Positions 3,333 through 55,474 of a DNA stretch of 64,000 bases are shown piece by piece. The position numbers were made by a program, and so were the translations under genes. How positions within the stretch are numbered: the first letter of the stretch is position 1; the number at the start of each line of letters is the position of its first letter. The notes beneath the pieces are model-generated. The model saw nothing but the letters and a program-made list of their open reading frames with translations. It searched no databases and was not told the origin of the DNA. Source of the stretch: Podarcis melisellensis (taxonomy: Eukaryota); the NCBI GenBank assembly GCA_964234715.1, contig OZ174281.1. One strand, written 5' to 3'.

Positions 3333-6300
3333 GTAAGTATTATGTAAGACGATTCTGTTTCGCCAGTTTAATGTGTGCATTGGATGCAGTTGCTGCTATG
3401 CCCTGATTCTTAATATTTTTAGTCTTTTGTTGTATGTTACCTGAAAACCCATTTGTATCAATTAGGTTAATAGCTAGGACCTTTGTGATTATTCTGTATT
3501 TTGTCTCCCAAGATGGGTGTTCATGTAGCTAAATTACATGCACTGAAAATCCATCTAGTCCATTTTCAATGAGCAAACATGTCCCCTCCCCCATTTTTCA
3601 TTACAGAATAAAAATATATCTGGAACAAAATTAAACTTTGTTAGTTTGATTGGGATGCTGCAAGATCCTTTCTTGGTATGCGGGATGGTTAAACATGGGT
3701 GTGTTGACATGGTAACTGACAGCTCTGTGTATGTATCTGTGCATTATAGTATACCTGATCAAGAGCACGTTGACAAAGTATGATCATAAGAAATAACAAG
3801 TAGCCGATTGATTTTCCTAATACATAAAGCTGTGTGGTACTGAAACATTTTGTTTCCTCAGTCAGCTCAGTTTTATCAAAGAATGTCAAAAGAGCTAGTT
3901 TAAATTTGTTCACATTCTTATTTTGTATTGTAAACCAATTATCTTCACTGATTTAAAGATATTGAGCATATAGCAATTTCTAAGTGGCATTGAGTTTTCG
4001 TAAAAGTAGTGAGACAATTGTGACTATAAATCAATTGTGGAGCAGCTTTTTTTCCCATTACTCAAAACATTTGGTTGTCACACTAAAACAGGAGTAGCTA
4101 ACTTGTGGCCCTCTCATATGTTTGGCTGCCATCTTCTCTCACCAGCCCCAGCAGGAATAGCTAATGGTTAGGGATTGTGGAATTTGTAGTCTGGAAAAAG
4201 GTGGCTAGGCTAGGACTTAATCCTTGAGTTTAAAGTCCCACTTCCCTGGTAACTGGAAGAACATGCTCTACGTTGCTTAGATATAGATGTGTCTTTGTAT
4301 TAAAAGTTTAAGTGTTCATAATTTCCCATCTACCAGCATTTGCTGCATTAATCAAATGTGTTTATTGCCTTTGGATTAAAAATGCCCCAGAGGTGTATTT
4401 GATGAAGGCCTGCATAATTGGTGGCTCACCAGTCAGAATACAACACACCAGCCGTGTCTGGTGGTTGCTGTGTGCTTGAGAAGCCCTCAGCTCTTGCTGA
4501 CCTAGGCAAGGGGTGGTGTGTGTGTGGCCACGTGTTTTAGGTAAGGAAAATGTCATTGGTTCCTCCATTTCCCACAACATATATTTATTAGCTACCTTTC
4601 TTTGACCTCCAAGATATATTTGTACCAAATAATTGTACCAATATTTGATTGGTGATTAAAACTTGCCTCTTGCTGTTGGGAGAAAGTCGGTGTCATTATG
4701 CTGTTAATACGCATAAATTGATTGGTCTGCACAGTGCATTACGGGAAAGATACGCTTCAGCCATCATTTTAAATGTTGATTATGCTTTAATGGTTCTACG
4801 CTAAATATATTCATTTGACTCTTAATGGACACCCAAAACCATTCATGCTGAATGTGTTATTCTTATCAGTGCTCTGACAAAAAAAGCACACACTTAACAT
4901 TTCTAGATGTTTCACTGTAACTTCAGGAATCCCTGTAAGCAGATGGCTTATACAAACAGTGCACACTTCATTCATGCTACCTGGAATTCCTTTGTTAGAT
5001 TATAGTCTTTGTAGGCTGTAGACTTTGGAGTCCTTCTATGGAGTGGATTCTCCACCTTTCATGTGAAAAGTGGAACAGCTGATGTCTCTTGAAAAGCATC
5101 AGCAACCATTAGCCAGACTGTGAGGAGGACAAAGTATTTACCATATTAGTTCTTCAGATTGACATCTTTCATCATCCCTTGTCCTTATCTTCCTCTTTGG
5201 TCATTTTAAATGGCATGTTTTTTCTCTTCCAGTCTTATGAAGCCCCATACAGTAATTCTTTACCAGTAACTGGAGCAATAAAGAAATAAGTGGTCTTGGG
5301 AATATTTAGCTAGAGGTGGGTAAATCAGTGGACTAACATAGAAGAAGGATTTGCAGTTTCTCTCCTGAATGAATCCATTTTTTTTACAAGTTTATATTTT
5401 AACCTACAGAAGAAAACAATAGGATTATTGTATGATGTTTGGATACATGATGCTGATGAGTGCATCTATTAAATACACAGTTTATTACTTATTTCATTTG
5501 TACCCAGGCCTGTTGAACAAATCAGTCTTTGCCTGTCAGTAAAAGGAAAGCAAAAAGCAGGGCAGCATAACATCGAGTGGATGGGAGTTCCACAATCTGG
5601 GAGCAAGCTACTAAGAAGGTGCTCTCTTGTGTTCTCACTAAACATGCCTGTGAATGTGACAGGGCTGAGAGAAAGACTTCCCCAGAAGATCTTAAAGCCC
5701 GGGCTCCCATAGGAAGATACACATCCTGAGTTGCTTTGGGTTCATTAATGGAGGGGGTGAATTGCGACGAAAATGTGAATAGGAGGTGGGGGCAGTCCTA
5801 CTTGATATACCACTTGGTATTTGCTACAGTGGCTTGGAGGGTGTGGTTCTTGTTTTTGTTGTTGTTTTGAGCAAGTAGTATGTAAATTTTGTAAAATAAT
5901 AAAAAGAGAAACCAAAATAAAACCATCCATATTTGAATTGGCTTTGAAGCCGGAGGAGTTTTGTGTATGTGCTGTTAGTCGAACTGTCAGATTGAAAAAT
6001 GTTACAGGATCATTAAGACTCAGAATTGCGAGGGTTGACTAATAAGTGGAAGAATAAAGTATTTAAGAGACTGTACCAAATGCTGGCCTGGACTGAGAGA
6101 TGGCTTTTATCTGGTGGGCAGAATATTTAGAAAGTGTTCTTTTGAAGCAGATTACCCACCTGACTCGGTGTACTCTTACGATTAATTTAGTGCTGGTGAA
6201 TGAAGCTAGAGAGGCTACTTGGGAGTCAGTTCTTCTATGGTCCATTGAGTGTGAAGGAATGACCGCTGGGTGTGGAGCACACTTCTGCTCACAGACAGCC

Positions 6301-16888: not shown

Positions 16889-17064
16889 NNNNNNNNNNNN
16901 NNNNNNNNNNNNNNNNNNNNNNNNNNNNNNNNNNNNNNNNNNNNNNNNNNNNNNNNNNNNNNNNNNNNNNNNNNNNNNNNNNNNNNNNNNNNNNNNNNNN
17001 NNNNNNNNNNNNNNNNNNNNNNNNNNNNNNNNNNNNNNNNNNNNNNNNNNNNNNNNNNNNNNNN
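16889..17064. other. Assembly gap (176 N)
   Basis: Run of N. Confidence 0.99.
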
Positions 17065-21413: not shown

Positions 21414-21655
21414 CAGTGGTACCTCGGGTTACATATGCTTCAGGTTACATACGCTTCAGGTTACACACTCCACTAAGCCAGAAATAGTGCTTCAGGTTAA
21501 GAACTTTGCTTCAGGATAAGAACAGAAATCATGCTCCAGCGGTGCAGCGGCAGCAGGAGGCCCCATTAGCTAAAGTGGTGCTTCAGGTTAAGAACAGTTT
21601 CAGGTTAAGTACAGACCTCCGGAACGAATTAAGTACTTAACCCGAGGTACCACTG
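21414..21655. mobile_element. Tc1/mariner (Tigger-like) MITE, family B
   Basis: TA|CAGTGGTACCTCGGGTTA ... TAACCCGAGGTACCACTG|TA; internal (GC)TTCAGGTTA repeats. Confidence 0.88.
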
Positions 21656-21819
21656 TACTGCCATTAACTCTCTTTTTTGAATGGGACATGTTCATAGTTT
21701 TGCAGAGAACAAGTGCTTCAGATTATTAAGTTAGTGTTTTCCTGACATGCTTCTATACATATCCTCCGACAGGCACAACTTAACTTTCAACCCTCAAAAG
21801 AATTCCCAAGTCATCCTTT

Positions 21820-21950
21820 CTCAACCTTGGGTGCCCATATGTTGTTAAACTACAACTCCTATCATGCTTGATCACTAGTTCTGCCAGCCAGGGATTATGG
21901 GGGTTGTAGTCCAACAGCATCTGGGGACCCAATGTTGAGAAAGGCTCTGC
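21820..21950. mobile_element. Old short hAT-like repeat (ACTACAACTC...GGGGTTGTAGTCC family); similar relics near 4090, 12420, 26980, 30690, 33625, 38450, 38620, 40450, 53140, 56520, 59990
   Basis: Recurrent degenerate palindromic motif of about 120 bp. Confidence 0.55.
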
Positions 21951-22742
21951 TAAGGTGTTTAGAACCATAAACATGTATCTTAATACAATACAAAATTCTT
22001 ATAGTCACTCAAAATATAACTTCAAAACAAATATTAACAAATGATTAAAAGCTTGGTGAAATAATAATGTATTAGTCAACTCGAACCTATCTCACATAAA
22101 TTTTGTGAGGCTAGAGCAGTGTTTCCCAACCGGTGTTCCGCGGCACACTAGTGTGCCGCGGAGCCTTGCCTGGTGTGCCGTGGGAGGGAGGCGGGCGAGA
22201 GGCGGGGCGGCAGCGGCGAGGATCCGCGTCGAGCCGGGGGCGGCTCCGCGGTGGCGGTGCCGAGGTTTCTCTCTCCATTCTCCCCTCACACACACACACA
22301 GGAAATAACACAGGATCAGCTGACAGGACCCGGCCAATGGGGCGGCGGCGGGGCAGCGCGCGCAAAAGGGAGGAGCGCGAGACAGCGGACGAGGAGGAGG
22401 CCGGCATGTCCGGGCAGCAGCATGGAGCCTTGCATGTCCTTTCAGCCCCGCACCCACCGCAGACCCCTTCCTATGCCACTGGTAGCTAGGCGAGGCGGGG
22501 GGCACTGGGCGCCACACCTCGGCGCCTGCAGCGTGCCTGAGCCATGCGTCTGCGGGCGAACTGCCTGCAAGCTCCGCTCTGGCCTCTGCCCACCGCCTCA
22601 GCCTCCCTACAGCTGAGGGGGAGGCTGCAGCGAGGCTCCACGCAGCGTGCCCTGCCATGGCTCGCCCCCATGGCACTCGCCCCTGGCTGCAGGACGCGCG
22701 CGCCGCCCCGGGCCCCTGAGCGGCTAGCTGCGCCGCTGCGCT

Positions 22743-22832
22743 GAGCGCAAGGAATACGTCCTCTCCGAGTTCGGCGTCGTCTTCGTGGGCAGCGCAAACC
22801 GCATCTCCAGCTTCGGGTGGAACTTTGGCCAG
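22743..22832 (+). pseudogene. Captured transglutaminase (TGM3/TGM2-family) exon fragment with native splice donor
   Basis: Translates ERKEYVLSEFGVVFVGSANRISSFGWNFGQ|gtaggg, matching the transglutaminase core-domain motif ER.EYV....G.I..GS...I....WNFGQ, which ends at an exon junction. In-frame stop upstream at 22725; no in-frame ATG. Confidence 0.88.
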
Positions 22833-23205
22833 GTAGGGGGAAGCCTTTGGGCGGGGGGGGGTGGAGACCGGGGTGGGGAGGGGTTAGGAGAGACGCTACC
22901 GGCGCTGTCCAGAAATGCCCAGAGCAACTGGAGCTCAGCTACGCGCACACATGCGCCCTCCAAATCCCGTTTCCCACCCCTTTCTCAAAAGAAGAGAGAA
23001 AAAATGGGTCCTGGGTGTGAAACCAAAGGACCTTTCCAGCTCCTCCTCAATTCTAGGTGTGGATGGCAATGCCTCGTGTCTCCTCCCCCGCGACCAGAGC
23101 ACACTTCCTAGGCTGGTTGGACGGTCCCTGGGGGTCTTCGGGTTGCCATATTTTGAAGAGCAAAAAACAGGACACATTTGTCGACTTCTGCTTTTAGCTA
23201 TGGAT

Positions 23206-23353
23206 CAGTGGCCTAGCGTGGGGGGTGCAGGGGGGGCCCGGCCACACCGGGCGCAACATCTGGGGGTTAGTGTTAGGGGGCGCAAATCCACGGGTTAGGG
23301 GGCGCAAATTACTTGCATTGCCCCGGGTGCTGACAACCCACGCTACGCCACTG
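23206..23353. mobile_element. Small TIR element nested in, or captured by, the Pack-hAT
   Basis: Ends CAGTGGCCTAGCGTGGG / CCCACGCTACGCCACTG (16/17 inverted match); internal direct repeat GTTAGGGGGCGCAAAT x2; no TSD seen. Confidence 0.65.
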
Positions 23354-24011
23354 CGGCCCTGAACGAGCAGGAGAAGGAGCTCAAGTGACGCTGCGCGCTG
23401 ACGTCACGGGGCTGTAATGGTGGTGTGCCTCGATATTTTTTTCATCAAACAAGTGTGCCTTTGCCCAAAAAAGGTTGGGAAACACTGGGCTAGAGTGCAA
23501 GAGTACCATGTGTGCCCCCTTGGATTCCTCTGGGGGAAAGCCTGGGATGCCAAAGTGATAAGTGAGTTTTCTGAGCAGGCATTAATATTACGTCGCAAGC
23601 TTTTGTTTTTTTTATTTTAAATCAATTGAGTGATTGTTGCTTACCATAAAATACAATAACTGGTGGAATGTGGTAATGATGCTTAACATATAGTGTGTGT
23701 CGAATGGATAGAGCATGTCACAAATAATTTTGGTAATCCTTACAACTGTTCTGTAACATAGCTTAATATTATCCCCATCTTGCAGTGGGAGTGAGGTACT
23801 GAGGCTTGGAGAATAGTCGCTTGTCTAAGGGCCACCTAGGGAGTGTTGGGGAACATGGAGGGTAACTGGATGGAGTGAAGGAAGGAGAAGCAGCAAGAAT
23901 GGAATCCATATGAGTAACTTCATGTGGTGCTCTGGATTAGGAAAATTGATCAATGCTTCTCTGAAGTCTGCTCATAAAGGAAAAAGAAATGATTGCAGCC
24001 ACAGAGGAGTA

Positions 24012-24376
24012 AAGGTAAAGGTAAAGGTACCCCTGCCCGTACGGGCCAGTCTTGACAGACTCTGGGGTTGTGCGCCCATCTCACTTAAGAGGCCAGGGGC
24101 CAGCGCTGTCCGGAGACACTTCCGGGTCACGTGGCCAGCGTGACAAAGCTGCATCTGGCGAGCCAGAGCCGCACACGGAAACGCCGTTTACCTTCCCGCT
24201 GGTAAGCGGTCCCTATTTATCTACTTGCACCCGGAGGTGCTTTCGAACTGCTAGGTTGGCAGGCGCTGGGACCGAGCAGCGGGAGCGCACCCCGCCGCAG
24301 GGATTCGAACCGCCGACCTTTCAATCGGCAAGTCCTAGGCGCTGAGGCTTTAACCCACAGCGCCACCTGCGTCCCC
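24012..24376 (-). mobile_element. Sauria SINE, young subfamily
   Basis: CpG-rich, TSD CCACAGAGGAGTA; same subfamily as 42809-43164. Confidence 0.92.
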
Positions 24377-27300
24377 CCACAGAGGAGTAGATCTGCTTTA
24401 TTTATCTTTCATGCAAGTTATTTAAGGAAGCATGTGGTGTCTTAGTTCAGTTTTTTTCTTCACCTTTTCTATAAACCAAAAAGTGAGACACTTTGACTTC
24501 ATTTGATTAAGGAGAAACTTATTCCGTAGCTTTGGGATTTTGTATTGCTATCAGTGACAGTATAGCTGGTGCCAAAGTCTAGATAAAAACCTTACCTTAA
24601 AAGAAATGTCTGAGCCCCTTTTTCTTGACCCCAGTCCAGCACCCTTTCCAGCCACTTCCTTCATTCTTAATGAATTGTACATGTCATGCTGTAGTGGGTC
24701 GTGGTCAATATTTGTTTAAATAGTTTTTATTTACTTATATATATTTTTAGGTCTTATTTTGTGTTTCATTTGTGTATTCCTTATTTATTGTAAGCTGCCG
24801 AGAGAACTTCATTACAAATGTTATACATACATAAATAAATGAATGCTGTAAATTGAAGATTTTATATTTCAGTGAACCACATATATAGTAGGGAGAGCCT
24901 TGTAATTAAATTCTTTTCAAGGTGCAAGAAGCATTCTGTTTACCAGTTGCATTTTTTTTAGTATATGGATTCCATCTGTGTTTCTTTCTAGATATTTGGT
25001 CTTCCCTGTAGTATTCATGGTTGTCAAAAAGTGGCCTTTTGGAGCTTCATAGAGAGGTGAGAGTTCAGAAGAAGAGAGAGAGACTTCCATGACATCCCCC
25101 CTTCCTATTCTACCCTGAATGTATGAAGGAACTTCAGGATATCACTTGCTGCTGGAGTGCAGGAAAAATGGTTCTTTCTCAGAGCTGCTTCTGGAATTAA
25201 GGGTATTAGCTTTCCAGAGGTCTGATAATCTGTGCTGAAGGGGGAGTATAAAAAACAGCTCTCAGTTAAAACGTGTGAGAGGAAAGATTCAGTTCAAAAA
25301 GTGAGACACTAACCTTGATGTTTGGCTTGTATGAAGCCAAAGCATAAGATGGCAATTGCATCTTCGTTGGAATGTAACTTACTCAGGTCAGACATAACAT
25401 TCAACTGTAGCTTAGTGTTATGAAGATGAACATGGGTGAGCTACAGGTTTGTGTTCTCCGTTCTCGTTCACATATGGGGGAGGATGTTTTAAAGCTTCTG
25501 GATGTGGTTTCAGACAAACCACCGTCTTCCATTTCCGCTGAGTGGATGGAACACTGGTTTGTTCAAATCCCAATTGGTTTAATCAAACCAGGATATTACA
25601 CCACATTTTGGTTCTAGAGGCTCATAATTGTGTAAAAGAAAACATTTCAATATGTCCAGCTTTCCCTACCTGACACGCTTTTAACTAATATTATGGATAA
25701 ATATATGAAACTGCCTTATACTGACTGAATCACTGGCCAGTCTCGTCCAGTACTGTCTACTCTGGCTGGCAAAAGTTGTCCAAGGTATATGTTGTTTTCT
25801 CATTCTTTTGCATCTGGCCGTCTTATAGATGCCTTATATTTTGTGTAGTAGTAGAAACTACTGTGCCTATACTGCTGCACTTGTTCTGTTCTTGAAAATT
25901 GATGCTGAGAGGATTTTTGTTCATTCTTCATCCTACTTTCCTGCCCTGACTATATGCATAAGGAGATGTCATTTTATGTTGGGGACTCTTTAGGCTTTGA
26001 AGGAGCTTTGGTCATTATGCCTGAGCAGTGGGGCAGAACTAATAGTTCAATTGTGCTCTAATTTTTATTTTGAACTGTATTGGAACCCAGTTTTCTAAGT
26101 TCTTTTCAAAAGGGCTGAACAGAGCTTGTTGTAGACATGTCCAACTGTTCTTGTTGTGAAACTAGTAGCAGTGAGGTGCACCGAGAACAATGTGTGCATG
26201 CTTCCCATGTATTTGCTGCAGGTGTTAACTTGGTGTCTGTTGCAAGGAATGCCTCCTTTTGCTTCCGTGTGGATTGCTCTCACAGGCAAGCATGGGAGCA
26301 GGACCTCAGACACATATCATAAATTAGGTGTTGGCAGGTTAGAATAATGAGTATGATCCTTCATGTAACCTCTTCCCAAACTGCTGAGGACTTTAAAGAT
26401 CATGACTAGTGCTTTGAAATTAAACCCAGAAATGCACTGACAAACCAGTGCAATATGTTACAACCCCAACCCACCTCCAGACATCAGTTCAACATTTCAA
26501 ACAGCCTTCTGGAGCAAGTAGGTGAAAAAGAGGAGTAGAGTTGTATGTCATCCACATGCTGATGACATTATTGTTAAATTTTGGGGTGGTGTGGTGTTTC
26601 TAGCTGAGATGTGACTGAGAAGCTATTTTAATAGCTCACCGTATTGCTGCTCTATATCACAGGTGACTGCTTAATAAACTGTAACATTATAACTATTCCC
26701 TCTTTTTAAAAAAGAAAGAAAGAATAAAACTTCATGAAAATTAACTTGGATACTGAATGCTAGCCTCATTTAACAAGAATGAAATAAGAAGAAACACACA
26801 GAAACTCAAATCCCACTCTTGGTTCAGGAGAACACATGTAAGTGGAACAGCTACCAAATAAGAATGTTAGCAAAAACTGAATTTATTAGGGCAATTAGAC
26901 CAATCAACATGTCACAAAACATCATACAAGCTTTTGAGTTTTCTGGAAATCTTCACCAGACTATATCAGGTATAGCCAGTGTGGGGCCCTCCACATGTTG
27001 TTGGTCTACAGTTCTCATCCTCTCTGACTACTGGCATGCTGGTTGAGTCTGAGGGGATTTGGAATCCAACAACATATGGATGGGACAGTTGTTGTCGTTT
27101 ATAAACTGTGTTGAAAAATAAAAAGTAACTACCAAACACAAAGCACTGTCTTCCAAGACAGATGCATGTACAGATGTCAAGCCTTGCATGCAGTTATCTC
27201 CTGGATGGGACAGTGTTGGCTATCTTGGGGCTGGATGGCAAACAGAACTGGGAAAGGGGGATTGGCACACTGTTTTGTGGCATTTTGGTTGGCCTAATAA

Positions 27301-55279: not shown

Positions 55280-55474
55280 ATGGCAGCAGCTTACCTAGAC
55301 CCAAACTTGAATCACACGCCAAGCTCAAGCACAAAGACGCACCTCAGTTCTGGGATGGAGCGTTCTCCTGGGACAATGGAACGAGTCCTAAAGGTTTTCC
55401 ATTATTTTGAAAGTAACAGTGAGCCGACAACATGGGCCAGTATTATACGTCACGGGGATGCTACAGATGTTTGG
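55280..55474 (+). CDS. PTK2: PTK2/FAK first canonical coding exon, codons 1-65 (whole exon 55248-55474, including 32 nt upstream of the ATG)
   Basis: Translates MAAAYLDPNLNHTPSSSTKTHLSSGMERSPGTMERVLKVFHYFESNSEPTTWASIIRHGDATDVW, the FAK N-terminus and start of the FERM F1 lobe. Acceptor ttttttccttcctcccatttcag|55248; donor 55474|gtaagc (phase 0); ATG in AAAACCATGG Kozak context. Confidence 0.98.

Follow-up and report, generated by a model that had tools for sequence, protein, structure and literature searches.

A 1371-bp unit (22117-23487) in the 64-kb window, by which we mean the whole stretch of DNA analysed here, raises the question of whether a transposon collected host DNA from several places or took it up in one piece and then carried it along. 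The initial annotation had described the unit as a young non-autonomous hAT transposon whose interior was a mosaic of captured host DNA. We consider it likely that the unit belongs to a Pack-type subfamily, present in multiple copies, of an abundant non-autonomous hAT family of wall lizards, either Podarcis or a closely related lacertid, and its transglutaminase (TGM) cargo aligns with a single donor locus as one block.

The boundaries of the unit are sharply defined. Both terminal inverted repeats (TIRs) are perfect over 15 bp, and a perfect 8-bp target site duplication (TSD) adjoins them on either side.

22109-22116, unstranded: left TSD copy GGCTAGAG; two copies in the window, each touching a TIR
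22117-22131, plus strand: left TIR CAGTGTTTCCCAACC, perfect; its sole partner in the window, the exact reverse complement, lies at 23473-23487 on the minus strand
23488-23495, unstranded: right TSD copy GGCTAGAG, directly abutting the right TIR

With up to two mismatches allowed, CAGTGTTTCCCAACC has these two matches only in the 64-kb window, compared with 0.18 expected. The TIRs and the TSD thus stand as the initial annotation had given them. Elements of the hAT superfamily have short TIRs (about 10-25 bp) that start with CAG or TAG and make an 8-bp target duplication, and the 15-bp CAGTGTTTCCCAACC and the 8-bp GGCTAGAG agree with both features. Relative to the hAT target consensus nTnnnnAn, the duplication has A at position 7 and G instead of T at position 2, a comparison based on this single site. 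The motif GTGTGCC or its complement GGCACAC recurs near both ends (22142, 22151, 22173, 23423, and 23453); these five occurrences lie within ~70 bp of the element ends, compared with 15 in the whole 64 kb. They are subterminal repeats and, by comparison with Ac/Ds-like elements, putative transposase binding sites. Together with the 8-bp duplication and the 15-bp CAG-type ends, they are structural marks that identify the unit as a non-autonomous hAT element.

The composition of the unit differs from that of its surroundings, with a GC content of 64% and a CpG observed/expected ratio of 0.75 inside the element versus 40-43% and 0.26-0.45 in the flanks, in keeping with the CpG-rich interior reported earlier. 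A Pfam search of the four long reading frames of the element found no family; the frames are therefore driven by GC content and are not genes, and the earlier statement that a transposase is lacking agrees with this result. Neither further copies of the element nor its TIR nor the small MITE described below were found elsewhere within the 64-kb window. Literature searches returned no paper for the TIR string and none on hAT capture in Podarcis.

To separate the backbone of the transposon family from the sequence peculiar to this copy, we used sequencing depth. Contigs of three related organisms (A, which is probably the source species, B, and C) and raw reads of organism B were aligned on 21617-23987. 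The depth of the single-copy flanks was 72-86 in organism A (run X15), 6-12 in organism B (run X2), 11.6-12.7 in organism C (run X7), and ~0.3-1.3 in the raw reads of organism B (run X24). The copy numbers given below are ratios of contig word depth, supplemented by raw reads at ~1x, and should not be considered as strict copy numbers. In the raw reads, with both directions summed, the depth was about 2650, 1670, 450, and 1160 across 22097-22416, and 134, 74, 214, and 69 across 22417-22736. It was 22-31 in 22737-23136, about 1200 in 23137-23216, and 4200-4900 in 23217-23376, and then 3000 followed by 1300 across 23377-23536. The abundant form of the backbone diverges from the present copy beyond ~22422, and 2042 raw reads carry a different but consistent sequence before 23385. 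This depth profile and the alternative joints indicate that both ends of the unit are arms shared by a family that numbers thousands of copies.

22117-22422, plus strand: left arm of the backbone; raw-read depth 450-2650; GGCACAC/GTGTGCC at 22142, 22151, and 22173; contains a promoter-like CCAAT/GC-box stretch
23385-23487, plus strand: right arm of the backbone; depth 1300-3000; contains the CRE-like palindrome TGACGTCA (23399-23406), GTGTGCC at 23423 and 23453, and the right TIR (23473-23487)

The sequence particular to the present copy is 22423-23384. Two pieces that had been counted as cargo consequently belong elsewhere: the promoter-like piece is backbone sequence at ~1000-3000 copies, and the CRE palindrome, which is indeed present, is likewise backbone at ~1000-3000 copies. 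The left arm of the present copy also contains an 81-nt segment (22264-22344) that is missing from most family copies, as the joint from 22263 to 22345 occurs in ~690 raw reads. In organism C, a contig continues with GCAACAGCAGCAGCAGCAACT after 22422, where the present copy (22412-22428) reads GGGCAGCAGCATGG. This continuation suggests a canonical backbone in which an ATG (22406) leads into a CAG/CAA repeat, which would fit a backbone that itself descended from a captured first exon. In organism B, ~25-40 copies have backbone position 22186 linked through a single T to MITE position 23207 (contig depth 439 in run X2; 25 raw reads in run X24), and this joint was not seen in organisms A and C. 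It represents a second backbone subfamily of organism B with a nested MITE, in which the two multiplied together.

The cargo contains a recognizable piece of a transglutaminase gene. The peptide encoded by 22740-22829 matches residues 149-178 of human TGM3 (E 1e-7). When the 31-residue exon peptide (22740-22832) was compared with 1.84 billion representative proteins, the best full-length match was a gecko TGM E-like protein, the relatives of which are squamate "protein-glutamine gamma-glutamyltransferase E-like" proteins with several paralogues. The TGM E-like protein P0025 of Podarcis muralis is identical to the exon peptide at 31 of 31 residues. Its gene in the P. muralis assembly GCA_964188315.1 was taken as the donor locus (L001), and the donor was read in P. 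muralis alone, possibly a species other than that of the window. BLASTN of the element and its flanks against L001 produced one collinear match (22739-23354 to L001 6004-6588), and the rest of the element was without a match. In a MAFFT alignment of 22746-23353 (608 bp) with L001, 552 of 574 positions were identical (96.2%). The 31/31 peptide match and the 96% identity of the intron suggest Podarcis or a very closely related lacertid as the source of the window. The captured block consists of four adjoining parts.

22742-22832, plus strand: captured part of the TGM3-like exon, in frame; 91 of 119 nt, encoding AERKEYVLSEFGVVFVGSANRISSFGWNFGQ; 86 of 87 nt identical to L001:6011-6097
22833-23139, plus strand: captured intron, unique sequence, with a GT splice donor at 22833; collinear with L001:6098-6403, 287 of 304 nt identical
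23140-23205, plus strand: 5' end of a repeat, TE-X (~1200x), resident in the parental TGM intron; 65 of 66 nt identical to L001:6404-6469
23206-23353, plus strand: complete 148-bp MITE with TIR CAGTGGCCTAGCGTGGG (~4000-4900x), nested in TE-X; random loose ends at 23206 and 23353

The parental exon spans L001 5979-6097 (119 nt, from the AG acceptor to the GT donor), and the captured block starts ~28 nt into it, at window position 22742, where a CGC microhomology is possible. Beyond the exon, the captured intron sequence totals 521 nt. About 100 contigs have random sequence before 23140, which is therefore the natural end of TE-X. The small MITE is identical to its parental counterpart at 114 of 117 positions, with an additional 28-nt length difference in a tandem repeat. 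In the parent, it is flanked by CTATGGAT on both sides as a perfect 8-bp TSD, and the MITE in the donor intron is a regular hAT-type insertion. The element retains the left CTATGGAT copy only. The capture ends to the base at the right terminus of the MITE (23353), and the second CTATGGAT and the remaining TE-X are absent; the chance of a random breakpoint falling on the MITE terminus is about 1/600.

Since the donor intron contains the TE end and the MITE with identical order and spacing, the exon, intron, TE end, and MITE are one block, not four. The initial annotation was right about the transglutaminase exon and the intron-like sequence behind it, the TE-like end near 23140, and the small element with TIRs. 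Its reading of the TE end and the MITE as separate captures does not hold, as both already resided in the donor intron. We also rejected the broader interpretation of many captured pieces, because 22742-23353 is collinear with L001 as one block that explains four of the five interior pieces. A donor elsewhere was expected and exists in the TGM3-like locus, but a mosaic drawn from several unlinked loci is not supported.

The unit also compares closely with the definition of Pack-TIRs in animals. Applied to 22742-23353 against the P. muralis parent, the parental comparison gave 96.2% identity and lengths of ~612 vs 580 nt (L001:6007-6586), within the limits of at least 90% identity and a length ratio of 80-120%. 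The alignment runs collinearly with the gene from the exon through the GT donor and 521 nt of intron, so that the cargo is not a retrocopy, and TE ends surround a non-TE interior, with the arms at 450-3000x and 22737-23136 at ~25x. The Pack-TIR pipeline discards any parental copy that has a transposon in its 100-bp flanks (Tan et al. 2021, Nat Commun 12:4280, PMC8277862), and here the right edge of the parental block is a MITE terminus inside another TE. Rather than defining the elements biologically, this filter serves a conservative pipeline as a control for segmental duplication, which in the present case is ruled out by the TSD together with the existence of an element-free site in organism C.

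Between the arms and the TGM block lie two stretches that the donor locus does not account for.

22423-22741, plus strand: GC-rich filler, 319 bp, part of a larger subfamily than the TGM-bearing one (~70-210x in organism B); without a match in the TGM locus
23354-23384, plus strand: 31-nt stretch between the captured block and the right arm; homology to the parent stops at 23353

A Pfam search of the filler found no family, and a comparison with L001 found no match. For its part 22447-22551, contigs with 88% identity occur at single-copy depth in organisms A, B, and C and could represent an older donor. Both stretches are possibly further captures. The filler is ~3x as abundant as the TGM part in organism B, indicating that the TGM capture occurred in an element already carrying the filler, i.e., by serial acquisition.

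The chimera is not confined to the present locus. The breakpoint between the filler and the TGM part (~22742) is crossed by contigs in all three organisms. In organism A, the contig spans 22596-22822 at a depth of 1089 (~13x single copy), and the neighbouring contigs have depths of 1763 and 1819 (~21-25x). The corresponding contigs span 22463-22772 at a depth of 259 (~25x) in organism B and 22423-22772 at a depth of 97 (~8x) in organism C. Each of these breakpoint-crossing contigs differs from the present copy by 2-10 letters. The depth of the junction contigs indicates that the chimera itself multiplied, to ~8-30 copies per genome across three related species. When the 127-aa frame spanning the TGM part served as a protein query to retrieve further copies from assembled contigs, there was no hit. 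The presence of the chimera in organisms A, B, and C implies that the capture predates their split. The family majority differs from the P. muralis gene by 3.3% in substitutions and the flanks of organism A differ from those of organism C by 2.4%, which agrees with a capture before the split. The multicopy chimeric junction in three related species supports a non-autonomous hAT-type family that was mobile recently and whose cargo moved with the element. In this respect, the initial annotation of a young, recently active hAT family that carries captured host gene DNA has gained support, with a TGM3-like donor at 96% identity over 608 bp.

The individual insertion can be followed at its junctions and at the orthologous site. 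Contigs of organism A at single-copy depth (records 2 and 8) cross both junctions without a mismatch and reach 22 nt into the element; among the contigs listed, none spans the whole element. Four letters, at 22566, 22796, 22906, and 23054, set the present copy apart from every other copy, and the three of them that have a counterpart in the donor are also unlike the donor. CpG to TpG/CpA accounts for three of the four private changes. With about 4-5 private substitutions, the present copy is young but not brand new. A relative without the element, which had been anticipated, was found in organism C, where a contig (record 18; 1121 nt, depth 12.7) runs from 21904-22113 straight to 23488-23985. 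By coordinates, this joint holds GGCTA of the left duplication and the full right GGCTAGAG, i.e., 13 of 16 letters, which is five more than a never-occupied site would keep. A neighbouring contig of organism C overlaps record 18 by the expected 30 letters, and the counts of letters and gaps add up. For these reasons, and going by coordinates, we consider a footprint left by excision more probable than a site that was never occupied.

Explanations that dispense with a transposing chimera have to account for the depth of the filler-TGM junction. An ordinary hAT-N copy at this site might have been filled in place with TGM DNA by transposition-independent gap repair, and most animal Pack-TIRs are single-copy and are proposed to arise in this way (Tan et al. 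2021, PMC8277862). However, the junction is present at ~8-25x in three species, including the one without the element at the orthologous site. The TGM donor gene was also not found within the 64-kb window, which gives no sign of a close cis donor, and we therefore attach hardly any probability to a capture in place. The high depth of the TGM part could alternatively reflect a tandemly expanded TGM3-like family or a segmental duplication instead of transposition, and several TGM E-like paralogues do exist in squamates. This interpretation is very improbable, because the multicopy contigs cross the non-genic breakpoint at ~22742 into filler that is absent from the TGM locus, and because TIRs and a TSD bound the unit, which organism C lacks at the orthologous position.

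The assembly itself deserves the same scrutiny. The insertion may be real and its assembled interior wrong, if the interior of a Pack variant was placed between the junctions of another family member. The ~20 near-identical relatives and the thousands of backbone copies would favor such an error, as would the independent contigs that enter each end by 22 nt without a listed one spanning the element. Nevertheless, the private substitutions at 22566, 22796, 22906, and 23054 fit an individual locus and not a collapsed consensus, and we consider a wrong interior improbable, if somewhat less so than the two explanations above. A copy of a multicopy Pack-type subfamily remains our preferred reading of the unit.

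Such a subfamily probably originated as follows. The backbone, of which thousands of copies exist, is GC-rich inside and carries GTGTGCC subterminal repeats next to its 15-bp TIRs. In one backbone lineage, other DNA took the place of the middle: first the GC-rich filler, and later one 608-bp stretch derived from a TGM3-like gene. Of a 119-nt exon of that gene, this block comprises the final 91 nt; these are followed by the splice donor and by 521 nt of intron in which two transposon fragments were already resident. Template switching during double-strand-break repair in the element is the most likely route of capture. On its right side, the block stops at the very base where a hAT-type MITE of the donor intron terminates, and from this we infer that a transposase-made DNA end at the donor MITE may have taken part, whether at the time of capture or through a deletion that later started from the terminus. 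Transposase supplied in trans by an autonomous hAT would then have moved the chimera by cut-and-paste, spreading it to ~18-25 copies in the species of the window, ~25-30 in the second, and ~8 in the third. The present copy landed 32 kb upstream of the first coding exon of PTK2 and made the GGCTAGAG duplication.

A bolder version of this scenario, in which hAT transposase is active now or was active very recently in wall lizards and the capture was transposase-assisted, is tentative and in our judgement rather unlikely. It rests on the fragment edge at the hAT MITE terminus and on the 13/16-letter footprint in the sister species. If it were true, intronic MITEs would mark where vertebrate Pack-hAT elements pick up exons, and wall lizards would offer a live exon-shuffling system in an amniote.

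DNA transposons that carry gene fragments and keep jumping are common in plants. The lizard element resembles the Pack-MULEs of rice and other plants, which are TIR elements with gene fragments that are frequently GC-rich and often stem from more than one acquisition, and which multiply with their cargo. However, Pack-MULEs belong to the Mutator superfamily, have a 9-10-bp TSD and long TIRs, and occur in plants, whereas the lizard element has an 8-bp TSD and 15-bp CAG-type TIRs and resides in a vertebrate. Alternative or aberrant transposition of Ac/Ds in maize generates composite insertions and flanking deletions that start at an element terminus. The rearrangement boundary of these events lies exactly at a hAT terminus, as at 23353, but in the lizard element the coincidence of the boundary alone is observed, with no sign of paired ends.

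Among animals, the largest survey identified 370 Pack-TIRs in 100 genomes, 208 of them on hAT elements (Tan et al. 2021, PMC8277862). Multicopy status applied to just four of these, of which Xenopus tropicalis has three and alligator one; the multicopy example shown had three transposition events, and the text mentions no lizard. Multicopy Pack-TIRs take GC-rich DNA and lie far from their parents (PMC8277862), and the lizard element resembles the multicopy animal Pack-hAT elements in its GC-rich cargo, its unlinked parent, and its amplification by repeated transposition. Similar to Pack-hAT-N8_XT of X. tropicalis (PMC8277862), it has hAT ends on both sides, an intron-bearing gene fragment, and an identifiable parent. 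Unlike the animal Pack-TIRs of that study (PMC8277862), it is present in ~8-30 copies per genome, a depth estimate, in three species, and its captured block includes transposons and ends at a transposon terminus. Animal Pack-type elements are almost always single, immobile copies, and a multicopy gene-carrying hAT is rare in vertebrates, although its kind is already known. What stands out here is the copy number, the spread over several young species, and the capture boundary at a transposon terminus. The family thereby provides a natural vertebrate system in which to study the mechanism of capture and the possible origin of new exons or promoters from captured DNA. Its assets are interspecific differences in copy number, one species in which the insertion is lacking or has been excised, and a donor suited to base-by-base alignment.

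The position of the present copy relative to PTK2 is relevant in this regard. The first coding exon of PTK2/FAK1 lies at 55280-55462 on the plus strand (MAAAYLDPNLNH...; MAAAYLDPNLNHTPSSS...RHGDATDV) and matches FAK1 structures (E 3e-14). The element is 32 kb upstream of this exon, with the TGM exon and its splice donor in the direction of PTK2, and it may plausibly lie inside PTK2, as initially annotated, in a 5'-UTR intron. The splice donor and the CpG-rich, promoter-like backbone of the present copy lie in sense upstream of the PTK2 coding sequence.

The neighbourhood of the insertion contains several other repeats. A GC-rich island at 24013-24378 was considered as a second cargo element and rejected, as it belongs to a tRNA-derived SINE with its own target duplication. 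This SINE (23999-24390, reverse orientation, ~500 bp downstream of the element) has a (GTAAAG)n tail at 24013 and the direct repeat CACAGAGGAGTA on both sides. A run of 176 N at 16889-17064 is an assembly gap or a masked stretch. The stretch 21617-21660 is the end of an extremely abundant repeat, with a word depth of ~8.5 million in run X15 compared to ~80 for single copy, and hundreds of contigs run from 21657-21660 into unrelated AT-rich sequence. Finally, a hairpin-like element of 130 bp occupies 21815-21944; its two 56-nt arms show 80% complementarity, and its raw-read depth of ~2250 marks it as highly repeated. It is a separate MITE, ~170 bp upstream of the hAT insertion.
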